Origin: Eutreptiella sp. 'Long Island Sound 2002'
Taxonomy: Eukaryota > Protista > Euglenida
NCBI GenBank assembly: GCA_964036045.1
Contig: OZ038378.1
Location: 174,344,001-174,408,000 of the forward strand
Reading direction: 5' to 3'
DNA length: 64,000 nucleotides
Below the pieces are notes generated by a model. The model was not told where the DNA came from and made no database searches. It saw nothing but the letters and a program-made list of their open reading frames with translations. Below, piece after piece: positions 2,170 through 11,756 of this stretch (positions within the stretch are counted from its first letter, which is position 1; every line of letters starts with the position of its first letter). Both the position numbers and the translations under genes were made by a program.

Positions 2170-4916
2170 TGTAAGCGACAGGATTATCCCACAGCCTCAA
2201 CGCGCATAAAGAACTGCACAATCCCATCTCTTGTAACTCAGATTGTTATACCCTTTGTCCGGGTCATGTCATATCTACACAAGAATGATATCAATGATAA
2301 AACACATACAAACATGTACAAATACACATGAATCTCATCATTCGAAATCTCGGTTTAATCTTTATCCGCACTCACGCGCGACCTACATTCTGCAACTATC
2401 GCGACTGCAAGCGCTGCAACTCATTTCCATTACACTCCCCTCCTAAGACCTGACATACACCTATGGAGGGGTCTGAAAATCATCAAATCTTATGGGGATG
2501 AGTTGCTGTGCCATATATAATCTGTTGGGTGCCTCAATGCAATCTGCAATTGGTTCAAATACACCATGGGGTTAGTCACCATGACCCTACACACTCCCCT
2601 ACCAAGCTTCAGGACCCCTGCCCCTAGCTGTCTAAGGCGGGCCTACTATGCCTCAGGGCCTAGCTGTTCAAACTGCTCTATAACATGCTTCAGTCACCTT
2701 AGCTTTCTATAGACTAGTGTGCAATGCCTCAACCCCTAGCTGTCTAGGCCTGAGTGTGTATCATACAATATTTTGATAAATTAGATTGAGAATTGGTGTT
2801 GAATTGTACAAAAAACTGGCAACCCATATGGCACAATAAAATAAATTACAACATCAGTGGGGGCTTTTTATTGTTTCCAGTGGCTTGGCTTTTCCTGCTG
2901 CACCTGCACAAAATATTTTGCTCCAAAAACCCACTGCTGGATTTTTTCCAAACAGTTTTCACAAAAAAGAGCCATCAGTGGTATGGCTACTCATGCAAAA
3001 ACAATGGTCCTCTGGGCGCACACCAGAGACCAAAACTGTTTTCAGAGGTTCAATAAAAACAGTTGTCATGCCCCACGCGAAAAGGGCAGAGTGGCCCGGG
3101 CTCCAACCAGCGCCACTGTAACCAGCTCCCTGCAATCCCTGCAAGGACCAAACACAAAGAAAAAAAAGAGCAAACTGCTTCCACACAAGCAGTGCAGAAT
3201 TCCAAAGCTGGGCAAACACGCCAGCGCAAGGACTCATCAGAGTCCACTGAGTGTCTCTCCAAAAGAAGGCACCCCACAAAATTAGGTGCAAAGCCAAAAA
3301 ACAGGCCTGAACTCAGGAGGGTCAGCGCCAAAGGCAACTGCAGTGGCAGCGCCATCGCTGATATATATAAGCCACTGAAAAAACTCGAACCCCAAAACAA
3401 CCCAGATGCCACAAAGGCACACCAGGGCACTGTCGCAAAAAAATAAGGCAAACCTGATAATATGTATGCACCAACCAGTGCAAAACACGTGTTGGCTGAG
3501 GCTGCCGGCGCCTCAGCGACATACCTGTTTTTCTCATCCTGCTCATTTGCATGCACAACATGCAACAGTAAGTGCCAAACAAACGGCGCTACCCAACGAC
3601 TGACAAACGAGGGAATAAACACCACCAAAATTCAGTGAGCAGGGCACACAGGACGCGCAAGCACATCCACTACACACCCACACCTCTGGTGTCACTGTTT
3701 CGCACAAACACACCCAAGAGCGGACGCGCACACACATCAACACTCGTGAATGCATAAGCTGTGAAACCTCCCACAAATGTAATTACACGTCAAGCGCCTC
3801 TGATGAACTCGTCGTTTGTGTCGCTCGTCGCTTGCGACACCGCGTCCTCTTGCTCCTTGTCTTCGGCTGTTCACACGCCGACTGCAACTCTGCCTCTGCC
3901 GCATCTAGCGCCGCCACGAAAGACTCCCAAAATTCTTTCGTTCCCGTGGGCTGAAGACTGGGCTCCGGCGCCCTCTCTTTGGGCTTTCGCAAAACCTAAG
4001 GCTCGCCGTTGTTGCTCAGAGCGCCTCCACACTTGTCATTGTCGCTCCAGTACAGCGCGGCTCTCTGCTCCGTTCGCCTACCTGTGTGTCTCTCTGATTC
4101 GTTCGCCTTTGGAGGATGACTGTCTTGCTGTAGTTCCCATTGCGCTTGTGTGACGAACTCTGCAGCGTTCGGCGCCTCGCTCGCCAAGTTGGTGAGCGCG
4201 TTTGGCGCCTCCTTTGCTCGTGAAAAATTTTCTTGGAAGCAATCACTCATGTGTTCCTCTTGTTTTTGCACCCACAAGGCTTGTTCAATGCCGCCGGCTC
4301 CGCACTCCCAAAGGTCTCCTCTCCTCTCTTCTCTACCCTTGCGATACCTCTCGGCTCTAGCGTTTCTCAGCTGCGCAGCAAAATCGGCGGCTGCTTCCTT
4401 GAGTCCCAGTCCCCTGTTTACGGCGTGTATGGCACAAGCTCTCACTGCTCTCTCTTGCGCTATTTCTCGTACCGATCCCTCTGTGCGACTCATGATCCCT
4501 CTCACCAGCAGCTCATCGCAGCACTCGACGATCTTGTTGTCATCCAACATGTTGAGCAAGCGCTACCGAAAAAGGTCTTCAGGGACTCCTTGGCAGCATC
4601 GGCAACGGAACCCCACCTGCCTGTCAGAACCCGGAACTTAGGTAACAATCTTGTAAGCGACAGGATTATCCCACGGCCTCAACGCGCATAAAGAACTGCA
4701 CAATCCCATCTCTTGTAACTCAGATTGTTATACCCTCTGTCCGGGTCATGTCATATCTACACAAGAATGATATCAATAATAAAACACATACAAACATGTA
4801 CAAATACACATGAATCTCATCATTCGTAATCTCGGTTTAATCTTTATCCGCACTCACGCGCGACCTACATTCTGCAACTATCGCGACTGCAAGCGCTGCA
4901 ACTCATTTCCATTACA
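2170..4916 (-). mobile_element. Non-autonomous LTR retroelement (265-bp LTRs, 2.2-kb internal region)
   Basis: LTRs 2170-2434 and 4652-4916 (TGTAA...TTACA, 4 substitutions seen). 5-bp TSD CCAAA at 2165-2169 and 4917-4921. PPT on the minus strand at 2435-2447 (cttaggaggggag). No RT or integrase ORF inside. Confidence 0.93.
3996..4559 (-). pseudogene. Helical/charged ORF remnant just downstream of the PBS, possibly gag-like
   Basis: 187-aa ORF in the position where gag is expected in the LTR element 2170-4916. No diagnostic motif recognised; the call is positional. Confidence 0.3.
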
Positions 4917-5030
4917 CCAAACACATCCAAGGGGCAACAGAAGGGTTTCAGGAAAAGTCAAAATGTGAAAAACTTTCAAGAGTCACTAAACAGCCTACGC
5001 AACAGCAATTTTGAGGCTTTCAGAGGGCCC

Positions 5031-6714: not shown

Positions 6715-9700
6715 GAAATCACGTCGCAGAGGTTGTTGGATCAAAGCCATGCAGGCGCATATAGGACATACCCATTTAGGCCTTTTTGAGGCTATTCGCA
6801 TACCCTACCTCAAGGGGTGTAATCGTTAGCCTAACCCTTTATGAAATTATCATTCTGTCCAATAAACGCATCCCCCCGTGAGTTTCTGGTCCAAACCCTC
6901 CCACATCACGCCTACTTGAAACCCACTTCAGAAATCAATCCGAAATCAGAATCAGAAAAATAAGTTTCGAAAACTTCGATTTGTGAGTTGCACATAGTGA
7001 AAAACTACATAAGCAGGTTGCGTACCAATTCCTTGGGACCCCCCCCCCCCCCCGGACCTGTCACCCAAATATTGTGAAAAACATGTAAATATGGCCCAAA
7101 ACATGCTTTACATACCTTGGATGGTCATTTTAGGCGATCACAATATCATAAAAAGAAGCTTCGAAAACTTCGATTGTTGAGCTGCCCAGGGTGAAAAAAA
7201 CTGCATAAGCAGGTTATGTACCCATCGCTTGCGAGACCCCCCCCCCCGACCGGACTTAATACCCAAATAGGGTGAAAAGCGCGTAAATACAGCCTAAAAC
7301 ATGCCTTACATAGCTTGGATCGTCATATCGTGTGGTCACCGTATCATAAAAATAAGTTTCGGAAACTTCGATTTTGGAGTTGCCCGGTGTGAAAAGCTGC
7401 ATAAGCAGGTTGTGTACCGGCCCATTCACTAGGCCATTGTTGTCGGAAAAAGTCATTTCACGTTTTTGGCACGGCTTGTGACCGGCTCTCAGCAAGGCTA
7501 AAGACTGCAAAAAAATGTCCTTCCGTATCCTAGTAGGCATGTACTGTCACAACATCCCCACTCACACCCCTCAGAGTGGGTACAATGCGGTCACTGGTGT
7601 CGCCAAAACCAGAAACGTAGCAAAAATGGCTGAAAAGTGCATTAACTGCATCAGCGCTCGTCCCACTCCGCCCCATATAAACCCCATGGAGTCGGGACCC
7701 GGAAACACTTTTTCGGCTCAAAATCGAAAAAAAACCAAAAGATTCCTGATTTTGAACCCAAAAAGGGGGGGGGGTTCGTTTTTTGACCCCCCCCCCCCAC
7801 CACTCCCCCACCGCCCTCAAGACTTGAAAAAAGTGGGTTTCAAGTAGGGGTGGTGTGGGGGGGTTTGGACCAAAAGCTCATGGGGGGATGCTTTTATGGG
7901 ACAAAATACTTATTTCACAGGAGGTTTGACGAGCAATTCAACCCCTTCAGGTAGGGTACGCAAATAGTGAAGCAGAATCGGTAACGATCCCCGCGTTTGC
8001 ATTTTTGTAGCAGAGCTTAGCGTCGCGAAGGCTTCTCGCGCATAGCGCGAAGTCACGCAAATGACGCAATTTTACGTCAAGAGATTGACTGAAGGCAGCC
8101 AAAAGCTGCCGTTACGTGTTTTTATTTGGCATTTATTTTTTATATAGTTAAATTCTGTAGCTTAATATATGCGATTTGCGTGGTGTATGTTAATTCTGTT
8201 TGTTACGGAATCTGTTTGTCGTTGACGTTCAGGTTTGTGTCATATGGGAGGACCGTCAAAGGTTCTCAGAATTATTTGTAGGCCGGCACTGGCCTGAACG
8301 CCGCATCCCTCGTCCTGGGGCAGCATGCCAGGGCATCGTGGACGCAGAGTACGCCCTCGTTGAGGGCCAAAGGTGTGGAATACGCCGGTGGCGCTTAGCA
8401 TCGTGGCAAGAGCGCCCTCGTTGAGGGCCTACGGCTACTGGCCTATGGCGCTCAGCATCGTGGAAGCTGAAAACTGGAAGGTCTCAGCCTATGATGGATT
8501 CACTGAAAGAAACCCTCGATACAGGTTAGACCTCCTGTGGATTTGGTGCGCTGCGTTTGCTATTGGGTGCCAGCAAGGCTTGGACGATCCAAGGGTTTGT
8601 ATCTTTGCATGAGCAGCAGGATATTTTATTATCAAAATCAATCTGTGGTTCAAAAAAGCTCGCAAGGAGTTCAGCTTTTCTCACGTGAAAGCAAGGCAGG
8701 ACCAAGCGTGCGGCGGCAAAGTATGCAGGAATACCAAGGGATCAGCATCTTGTTTTTCTCACGTCAAAGCAAAACAAGGGATCAGCATCTTGTTTTTCTC
8801 AAGTCAAAGCAAAGCAAGTGTGGCCAAGACAAGCTGGATAGCAAAATGGTAGACAAATCAGTGGATCAAGAAAGGGAAAATCAGTGCAAGGCAGAGATTT
8901 TCAAGATCAAAGAAACAAGTTCAGCGCAGTGTCCCGTGGGTCTCAAGGGTCGAAGGCCTCACGCTCCGCGAGGCCCCACGGTACCGCTTCAAAATAATTC
9001 TGAAGGAGCGTCTAGCCGCCTTAGACGCGTCCGATCATGTGTTGCAAGCAGCCGCGTGTGGAGTGGACAACAAAACTGAAGATTCCCGAATCCTTCGAGG
9101 GGTACACGTTCCGTGCCAGCGTGTACAAAGTATGGGTGCTCCCGACCATGGTCCACAGTTACAGCGGGTGGTGAAGAAAGGTGCACAAGACCAGCATCGG
9201 TGCTGCACGGAAGCCATGATGCGTCGGAGGAGACAACGTCGAAGCAGGCCTTCGTTCAACCTTCGAGGTCTCAGCGAGAGTCGCCAAGTAACGTTGGAGA
9301 AGCCCGTCTTCGCGGCCGGCAACCTGGCTAAGCTCTTAGGAGGGGCATGAAGCGGAATCGGTAACGATCCCCGCGTTTGCATTTTTGTAGCAGAGCTTAG
9401 CGTCGCGAAGGCTTCTGGCGCATAGCGCGAAGTCACGCAAATGACGCAATTTTACGTCAAGAGATTGACTGAAGGCAGCCAAAAGCTGCCGTTACGTGTT
9501 TTTATTTGGCATTTATTTTTTATATAGTTAAATTCTGTAGCTTAATATATGCGATTTGCGTCGTGTATGTTAATTCTGTTTGTTACGGAATCTGTTTGTC
9601 GTTGACGTTCAGGTTTGTGTCATATGGGAGGACCGTCAAAGGTTCTCAGAATTATTTGTAGGCCGGCACTGGCCTGAACGCCGCATCCCTCGTCCTGGGG

Positions 9701-10390
9701 CAGCATGCCAGGGCATCGTGGACGCAGAGTACGCCCTCGTTGAGGGCCAAAGGTGTGGAATACGCCGGTGGCGCTTAGCATCGTGGCAAGAGCGCCCTCG
9801 TTGAGGGCCTACGGCTACTGGCCTATGGCGCTCAGCATCGTGGAAGCTGAAAACTGGAAGGTCTCAGCCTATGATGGCTTCACTGAAAGAAACCCTCGAT
9901 ACAGGTTAGACCTCCTGTGGATTTGGTGCGCTGCGTTTGCTATTGGGTGCCAGCAAGGCTTGGACGATCCAAGGGTTTGTATCTTTGCATGAGCAGCAGG
10001 ATATTTTATTATCAAAATCAATCTGTGGTTCAAAAAAGCTCGCAAGGAGTTCAGCTTTTCTCACGTGAAAGCAAGGCAGGACCAAGCGTGCGGCGGCAAA
10101 GTATGCAGGAATACCAAGGGATCAGCATCTTGTTTTTCTCACGTCAAAGCAAAACAAGGGATCAGCATCTTGTTTTTCTCAAGTCAAAGCAAAGCAAGTG
10201 TGGCCAAGACAAGCTGGATAGCAAAATGGTAGACAAATCAGTGGATCAAGAAAGGGAAAATCAGTGCAAGGTAGAGATTTTCAAGATCAAAGAAACAAGT
10301 TCAGCGCAGTGTCCCGTGGGTCTCAAGGGTCGAAGGCCTCACGCTCCGCGAGGCCCCACGGTACCGCTTCAATAGCCCCGAAAAGCCCTT
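6715..10390 (-). mobile_element. Inverted copy of the same element family (terminal modules at both ends), interrupted by the LTR element 7968-10371
   Basis: 6950-7900 is the reverse complement of the body and tandem units of 5031-6240. The terminal module gtagggtacgcaaatag|ccccgaaaagccc is split by the LTR insertion. Confidence 0.7.
7968..10371 (+). mobile_element. Young non-autonomous LTR retroelement (two 1024-bp LTRs, 356-bp internal region; TRIM/LARD-like)
   Basis: LTRs 7968-8991 and 9348-10371 (TGAAGC...GCTTCA, about 5 substitutions seen). TSD ATAG at 7964-7967 and 10372-10375. PPT cttaggagggg(ca) at 9335-9347. No coding capacity for RT or IN. Confidence 0.93.
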
Positions 10391-11756
10391 TGGTAGTAGC
10401 AAAAAATTGATTGTTTATTTGTTGTGCTCTTGTTTGTCTGTTTACTTATCTATTCTATGGATAAGTATAAGATGACATTATGTAAGCTAGTATGTTGGGT
10501 GAAGGCATGACGAGGGTCCCTATGATTATTATGAAGATGACTAAAATGACAATTATTATGAGAATTCAAGGTTTTTCTATGCTTGCTTTGTGTGCCCCAT
10601 CGATGTGCTGTGAAAGGAAGTAGACACCATGGGATCAAATAGGAATCAAGCAAGGATTTCAAAGAAAGTTCACATTTGGATTGCCCGTTTTCTTGCTCAA
10701 CCCACCAATGGTTATTGGACTATTGAGAAAAGACCTTACATGAGACCAACAATCATTCCGGCCAAAGAAATTTAATTTACAATGCCGCATTGAAAGACGC
10801 CGTGGGAATTGCCGCAGACCGATCGGGTGACACTCAGCATGATTATTTTCAGCACAGTGCTGTGGCGAATCTTTCAAAAAGATTGCAGTTCTGTTGTTTC
10901 TTTTATTTTAGACATGCGTGTGGCCAAAAGGAAGGCGCGGCGCTCGGTGCACCATGTTGTGAAAGGCACAAAGAGGTGTAGTGTGGCATTTCAAAAAAGT
11001 AGCTACAGCGCGGGATGGAAGGCCAAAATACAATCACAAACACGGAAAATTTCCGAAGGACTATAGAATAGCGGTTGCCCAATGGACGTTGCTGCTGTAC
11101 GGCCTCTTTTCTTTTTTCCCAATCCACATGCGTGTCCGTTTGCTATTTGGGCACCAAAAATGTGAAATGCTCATATTCGCAGAAGTTTTGTAGCTGAACG
11201 GCCTATTGCATTGGATTGGTAATTTAAGATTGGAACTAACATTGCAAAACTTGAAAGAAAGATGCGACTAGCTTGCGCAACTTTTGCGGTCAATGACGCT
11301 TTGTCCCAAGATCTCAGGCCAGCTGTGGCAGCTGAGATCATTCAGTCAACAATTCCATGTTGGCTTGTTGCAGAGATAAAAAAACACTTTCCTCATTTAG
11401 TGCCCCGAGGGGGATCAAGCTTTCTAATTAGTTTCAATTTGATGATGATACTCTCCAACGCACCCGCAACGCAACATATGCGCCCAATCATGAACGGGTG
11501 TTTGTGCACAAATGGGCACTTTCTGAGGTGTTCCGTCAACAAAATCCCCCATTTCACTACTGAAGCATTGGGGGGTGGCTCCCTCCAAGATTCCCTTGGC
11601 AAGCAAAAACCCAACCCACTGAAAATAAAAAAAATTCTTCTTGAAATTGGGCTCCAAGTCCAATCAGTTTGGGTAGCACAAATGATTCTGTGATCCTTGC
11701 CTTGGCCATGACACAATTTGGCGTCCTAGGCAAAGAGATGAAGGTATATGTAGACA

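Follow-up and report, generated by a model that had tools for sequence, protein, structure and literature searches.

We analysed a 64,000-nucleotide stretch of the genome of the euglenid Eutreptiella sp. 'Long Island Sound 2002' (GenBank assembly GCA_964036045.1, contig OZ038378.1, positions 174,344,001 to 174,408,000 of the forward strand), hereafter called the window; positions given without a contig or locus name refer to it. Read directly from the sequence, positions 7968-10371 form a complete long terminal repeat (LTR) element of 2.4 kb (Table 1). The primer-binding site of this element is an exact reverse complement of a segment of its own LTR, and in six genomic copies with one particular change in the primer-binding site, the compensating change is present in the LTR.

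An earlier reading of the window (the original prediction) had described a young, non-autonomous LTR element here. The TG...CA LTRs, the ATAG duplication on both sides, the polypurine tract and an empty site confirmed that this is an LTR element. The empty site is paralogous: in contigs of public runs, other copies of the flanking repeat go from ...ATAG into sequence resembling the DNA that follows the element, and the insertion of the element is therefore confirmed. The two LTRs differ at approximately 5 positions in 1024 bp, an identity (99.5%) that agrees with the predicted youth. No open reading frame (ORF) of the element, the longest ones included, had a Pfam match, and the core measures only 356 bp; the element is thus a non-autonomous LTR retrotransposon without gag or pol coding capacity. 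The AT-rich TATA-like boxes and the ggcctc/gaggcc stem-loop that had been predicted are both present in the sequence. The inner arms of the stem-loop (ggcctc, 8955-8960; gaggcc, 8970-8975) are enclosed by a larger stem in which cccgtggg (8933-8940) is paired with cccacgg (8976-8982). A motif like the polypurine tract AGGAGGGG also precedes the 3′ LTRs of the candidate helper element described below and of another element in the window (2170-4917).

Table 1. Features of the LTR element, and coordinates of variant copies and of the candidate helper
Feature	Position	Strand	Basis or remark
Left target-site duplication, ATAG, 4 bp	7964-7967	+	Sequence; different 4-bp duplications at other copies
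5′ LTR, 1024 bp, TGAAGC...GCTTCA	7968-8991	+	99.5% identity to 3′ LTR
AT-rich TATA-like strings, putative role	8141-8171	+	Seen in sequence; ~100-125 nt upstream of predicted start
Predicted self-primer TCAGAATTATTT, proposed transcript nt 1-12	8266-8277	+	Exact reverse complement of 8992-9003; covaries with primer site in subfamily
Predicted U5-end hairpin	8931-8985	+	Computed folds; stops a few nt short of LTR end
Primer-binding site AAATAATTCTGA, abutting LTR, without TGG	8992-9003	+	Sequence
Non-coding internal core, 356 bp	8992-9347	+	97-100% conserved in at least 40 copies; no Pfam match
Polypurine tract AGGAGGGG	9338-9345	+	2 nt ahead of 3′ LTR
3′ LTR, TG...CA	9348-10371	+	Sequence
Second copy of self-primer, in 3′ LTR	9646-9657	+	Sequence
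Right target-site duplication, ATAG	10372-10375	+	Sequence
Junctions with primer site AAATAAGTCTGA	C4:53754528 and C4:53755908 (one tandem array); C4:78564925; C3:159511838; C7:31939881; C2:150651071		
LTR sites reading TCAGACTTATTT	C4:53753800-53756592 (array; 3 LTRs, 2 junctions); C4:78564220/78565587; C3:159511179/159512536; C7:31939192/31940533; C2:150651723		
Candidate helper copies	L061:1447-10000 (-); L025; L064:2181-19449		

Complementarity and covariation of the primer-binding site and the LTR

The primer-binding site AAATAATTCTGA directly abuts the terminal CA of the 5′ LTR, with no TGG after it. As had been predicted, these first 12 bases of the core are the exact reverse complement of LTR positions 8266-8277 and, in the second LTR, 9646-9657 (12 of 12 nt, offset 0). 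The match is exact in length, the flanking base being mismatched on each side, and the LTR contains the reverse complement of no further core 12-mer. When the LTR was shuffled 20,000 times with its dinucleotides preserved, a match of at least 12 nt at offset 0-3 arose at a rate of 5.5e-4. The two 12-mers are separated by 714 nt (8278-8991). For an RNA spanning 8266-9015, the predicted minimum-energy and centroid structures both placed nt 1-12 in a duplex with the primer site, a result that is informative only in that no competing structure wins, as the RNA ends were chosen so that pairing is expected. Because many elements were scanned, a match with P ~5e-4 could have arisen by chance in a repeat-rich genome. 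However, the compensatory variant and three additional families that have independent pairs, including one with 6157 occurrences (both described below), make a chance origin scarcely credible.

Alternatively, a host tRNA, a tRNA half or another small host RNA could prime from 8992 onward, the LTR 12-mer being incidental. The absence of TGG at or near 8992 excludes pairing with tRNA CCA ends (and with CCA ends only), and neither the window nor the examined loci yielded a tRNA with ARAGORN. With an A+T content of 83%, the site also does not resemble nuclear tRNA sequence. Moreover, a fixed host primer can explain neither the compensating change in the LTR nor why, in four families, the primer site is matched to the LTR of its own element through a sequence that differs from family to family. 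Although priming by tRNA halves exists in some copia lineages (PMC6317226), we regard a host primer as very improbable for this element.

The genome contains at least 129 LTR-primer-site junctions of this family, along with at least 389 LTR candidates; among the copies scored, identity was 97-100%. Some copies are full-length and some are interrupted by nested insertions, solo LTRs and tandem LTR-core-LTR arrays also occur, and the 4-bp duplications at other copies include GTCC, CTAC, GTGC, GCCA and TTAT. The number of junctions, the variety of the duplications, the solo LTRs and the nested copies bear out the mobility claimed for the family. Head-to-tail LTR-core-LTR-core arrays reach 5 units with a period of ~1283-1380 bp (C3:115730694-115736532, C8:68198921-68204087 and C6:12675007-12679138); unequal recombination could have produced them, or they could have formed in the course of reverse transcription.

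At six of the listed junctions the primer site is AAATAAGTCTGA, with a T-to-G change, and one of these (C2:150651071) carries one further change beyond the G (AAGTAAGTCTGA). In all six copies, each readable LTR site was TCAGACTTATTT, which contains the compensating A-to-C change (Table 1). This exact LTR change was present in none of the ~30 other elements examined. The closest sequence elsewhere was the double variant TCAGACATATTT at an LTR site of a tandem array (C3:90684277), the primer sites of which lack the G. When the three 12-mers were masked, the three compensated copies examined did not form one clade in the tree, and they carry at least two U3 haplotypes with no other diagnostic base in common. 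An alignment of the LTRs of 65 copies (blocks at window-equivalent positions 8054-8111, 8321-8350 and 8610-8858) revealed that the family is a mosaic of haplotype blocks (U3, mid-LTR, U5 and core) that show no linkage to one another. Because of this mosaic structure, the C/G coupling must have been kept through reshuffling or have arisen more than once. The blocks imply frequent recombination between copies, with template switching between co-packaged RNAs as its probable route. Such coupling is expected under self-priming, because plus-strand strong-stop DNA would copy the RNA primer, as in the Tf1 model, and an LTR change would thereby enter the primer site one generation later.

The covariation among genomic copies that had been proposed as a check was thus found for the G/C pair, in six copies out of six, and was incomplete for a second variant, at least five carriers of which keep the unchanged 5′ LTR site. 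Approximately 14 copies carry this primer-site variant, AAAAAATTCTGA, and approximately 10 LTRs carry the matching variant TCAGAATTTTTT; the two co-occur only in one array (C5:101045879-101048629) and partly at C6:77651451. The complementary variant AAAAAATTCTGA was mostly seen in copies other than those with TCAGAATTTTTT. Where a position could be assigned, the LTRs with TCAGAATTTTTT were mostly 3′ LTRs, and just one was the 5′-most LTR of an array.

A candidate helper and the priming signals of other families

The original prediction had called for a search for the autonomous partner. A candidate was found in a chromodomain Ty3/gypsy element of ~17 kb, which has LTRs of 2944-3025 bp and an 11-nt pair of its own. 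On contig C6 it is nested in a copy of the small family (C6:115083361-115102954), with LTRs of 2944 bp and a GTAA duplication, and the 1200 nt of its 5′ LTR that were compared are 100% identical to the 3′ LTR. Apart from this insertion, the host copy at the locus is a normal copy of the small element. A second locus, C15:40050713, was considered as an autonomous form and rejected: it consists of an LTR and 39 nt of core followed by a nest of other elements, and no 3′ LTR was present within 20 kb.

The helper LTR runs TGAAGCGG...GCGTCA, and its polypurine tract is AAGGAGGGGGG. The pol ORF of at least 1372 aa (L061:5885-10000, minus strand) matched RVT_1, RT_RNaseH, rve and Chromo, and its best relative among solved structures was Ty3 Gag-Pol (E 9e-66); none of the best 120 homologues listed has an informative name. 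Another copy, L064, comes from a public ENA assembly; its protein (P0002) is 97% identical, and its 5′ junction reads GCGTCA/AAAGCGTTTCA. This 11-nt primer site, AAAGCGTTTCA, abuts the LTR, and its exact complement, TGAAACGCTTT, is located in the LTR 121-123 nt before the LTR end. The helper junction occurred 6157 times in the genome when up to two mismatches were allowed, versus 0 times for a reversed control, and given this number the helper family could account for a considerable part of the genome.

The LTRs of the small element and of the helper begin with the same 8 nt (TGAAGCGG), agree at 15 of the last 18 nt of U5 and have an alignable CCCGTGG/CCACGG hairpin stem just ahead of the LTR end; the two elements also have the polypurine region and the 4-bp duplication in common. 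Beyond these cis-acting ends no shared sequence was found, and the similarity around the two predicted starts was not significant. The enzymes of the small element, including an integrase that makes 4-bp duplications, and its particle would thus most likely be supplied by the ~17-kb chromodomain element. One chimeric junction, L030:1469-1530 (C4:111672845-111672880), is unique in the genome: the end of a helper LTR is followed by exactly the 11-nt helper primer site and then by a small-family LTR from approximately its fourth base. A template switch by plus-strand strong-stop DNA may have produced it, and such an origin would hint at joint reverse transcription of both RNAs.

Two further families have LTR-complementary primer sites. 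The element at 2170-4917 of the window, on the minus strand, has 266-bp LTRs, a 5-bp duplication (CCAAA) and an internal ORF, and its polypurine tract is TTAGGAGGGGAG. Its internal region opens, at offset 0, with 9 bases complementary to a site in the LTR of the same element, 79 nt before the LTR end. A non-coding LTR element in a public assembly that is apparently from the same organism (L067:2385-7579) has 751-bp LTRs and a 5-bp duplication (CCGCT). Its 15-nt primer site ATCTTATACTTATCT is a perfect complement of its own LTR at offset 0, 290 nt before the LTR end, and no match of this kind arose in 2000 shuffles. In contrast, a related chromovirus (L066:5577-16305), the pol region of which is 61% identical to that of the helper (protein P0018, in a cluster of 4545 member sequences), has 1318-bp LTRs that are not of the TG...CA type and a conventional primer site, TGGTAGCAGAGG, with TGG; its complementarity to the LTR amounts to a 6-nt chance match. 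Because of this conventional site, the LTR-complementary signal is specific to certain families and is not a general property of the LTRs of this genome. Two priming modes thus appear to coexist among related elements with ~61% identical pol regions. A contig listed in Logan (SRR13425446) is probably a full-length transcript of a related chromovirus.

The compensatory double change in six of six copies, together with the like architecture of the candidate helper and of the two further families, supports the self-priming that had been predicted. Covariation indicates pairing or templating rather than priming as such, and the folds are computed; the long-range pairing could therefore be real and serve RNA cyclisation, dimerisation, packaging or strand transfer, with reverse transcription started by another primer. 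However, the end of the duplex coincides exactly with the boundary between LTR and internal region in each of the four families; a minus-strand primer must have its 3′ end there if the U5 end is to be set, and no alternative primer site is present. We therefore consider a pairing without a role in priming improbable.

Self-priming as the proposed start of reverse transcription

Taking these observations together, we think it likely that the element is a helper-dependent LTR retrotransposon that initiates reverse transcription by self-priming of the Tf1 type. This proposal builds on what was established directly: the anatomy of the element, the complementarity of its primer site and LTR, covariation both inside the family and across families, the absence of coding capacity, and the ends shared with the candidate helper. 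From these results we infer where transcription starts, that the primer is cleaved off and copied, and which element acts as the helper, and likewise that 8278-8991 is the R-U5 region of one RNA. The RNA of the element would begin in the LTR at or near 8266, and its first 12 nt, UCAGAAUUAUUU, would fold back across ~714 nt and pair with the primer site right after U5. The helper-encoded reverse transcriptase/RNase H would then cleave after nt 12, and the freed 3′ end would be extended through U5 and R to give minus-strand strong-stop DNA. Plus-strand strong-stop DNA would subsequently copy the attached RNA primer, so that the primer site is rewritten from the LTR in each cycle; the two 12-mers would stay complementary because of this rewriting. 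The resulting rule of inheritance, by which the primer site derives from the 5′ LTR of the parent and the LTR sites derive from its 3′ LTR, fits the C/G copies as well as the AAAAAA primer-site copies with an unchanged LTR site.

Several observations weigh against this proposal. None of the listed sequencing runs that contain the stretch is recorded as RNA. The TATA-like strings precede 8266 by 100-125 nt, and little is known of euglenid promoters. The ~714-nt loop is several times longer than that of Tf1. The link to the helper consists of short shared ends and of a single duplication seen for the helper family. In addition, at least five copies with AAAAAATTCTGA have an unchanged 5′ LTR site, and strict complementarity is thus not universal; these copies may either tolerate one central mismatch or have been copied from a variant primer.

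The position of the TATA-like strings also favours a form of self-priming in which the RNA starts upstream of 8266, for example ~30 nt past these strings, and the primer is excised internally. The end of the U3 linkage block, which linkage analysis places somewhere within 8171-8321, is compatible with such a start. On the other hand, the pairing stops exactly at 8266, and the primer of Tf1 is formed by the first 11 nt of its mRNA, which counts against an internally excised primer. An upstream start is therefore rather unlikely in our view. The unlinked blocks fit a strand transfer near 8266, a weak but consistent hint in favour of a start at that position, at a resolution too coarse to place R. 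Joining of a spliced leader at the AG inside the 12-mer was also considered and was not supported: with the leader sequence attached, the pairing would be shortened, not lengthened.

The self-priming proposed here resembles that of Tf1/Tf2 of Schizosaccharomyces pombe and the Tf1/sushi group in that no TGG is present for pairing with a tRNA CCA end and that a site of 11-12 nt abuts the 5′ LTR and is complementary to the LTR interior. The predicted U5 hairpin of the small element adjoins the primer site, in a position like that of the Tf1 U5-IR. The candidate helper, a chromodomain Ty3/gypsy element with an 11-nt pair and ~120 nt between the LTR site and the LTR end, is likened to the Tf1/sushi chromoviruses by domain content (Ty3/gypsy pol, C-terminal chromodomain) and primer pair. 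The differences are the euglenid host, the lack of any coding sequence in the small element and the distance of ~714 nt between its paired segments. Self-priming was also predicted from complementarity between LTR and primer site in the Tcn1 clade of mosses and club mosses and in the Ty1/copia TAR lineage (Houba, Osr-1) (PMC6317226). Those elements belong to another host supergroup, whereas here a compensatory change and a helper/parasite pair with different primer sequences are added. Terminal-repeat retrotransposons in miniature (TRIM) and large retrotransposon derivatives (LARD) likewise have LTRs, a primer site, a polypurine tract and a target-site duplication without gag or pol, share only cis-acting ends with an autonomous family, and form solo LTRs and tandem LTR-core arrays. 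However, typical members have tRNA-type primer sites, and a length of 2.4 kb with 1-kb LTRs suits neither name.

Tf1/sushi elements have been reported as self-priming, the same was predicted for Tcn1 and the copia TAR lineage, and one survey predicted it for 12% of plant elements (PMC6317226, PMC6934838). Our literature search found no report of self-priming elements in euglenids, the host genome itself having been reported as rich in LTR elements (PMC11252322). The novelty claimed by the original prediction is thus retained for the host, whereas the self-priming mechanism is well known elsewhere. Our results support the presence of this known mechanism in a new host lineage and in a non-coding parasite. 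Most elements for which self-priming has so far been shown or predicted are Tf1/sushi elements of fungi and vertebrates or belong to certain plant lineages; the present case would extend the mechanism to a distant eukaryotic supergroup. The different primer sequences of helper and parasite suggest that the enzyme reads structure and not sequence. Annotation tools designed to find tRNA-type primer sites would give wrong scores to these elements, which are very abundant; the architecture also gives testable predictions for RNA 5′ ends.

More tentatively, self-priming could be the main start of reverse transcription in a large radiation of euglenid chromoviruses and of the elements that parasitise them. 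Families, a parasite and its helper among them, would drift to private primer sequences, the helper enzyme would recognise only the fold, and the C/G and AAAAAA copies would be footprints of templating across ~714 nt. A private primer sequence in each family would be possible because the primer site is re-copied from an LTR-derived primer in each cycle.

Two minor observations concern other LTR elements. Just past the element studied here, at 10388-10486 of the window, lies a 99-nt fragment of the LTR family of L067. A gag-pol frame on the minus strand at L062:3-4166 contains three in-frame stops; it encodes an aspartyl protease followed by a weak match to a Dam-like methyltransferase, and resembles the DAM-LTR elements that a 2026 preprint reported for Euglena (10.64898/2026.05.21.726589).

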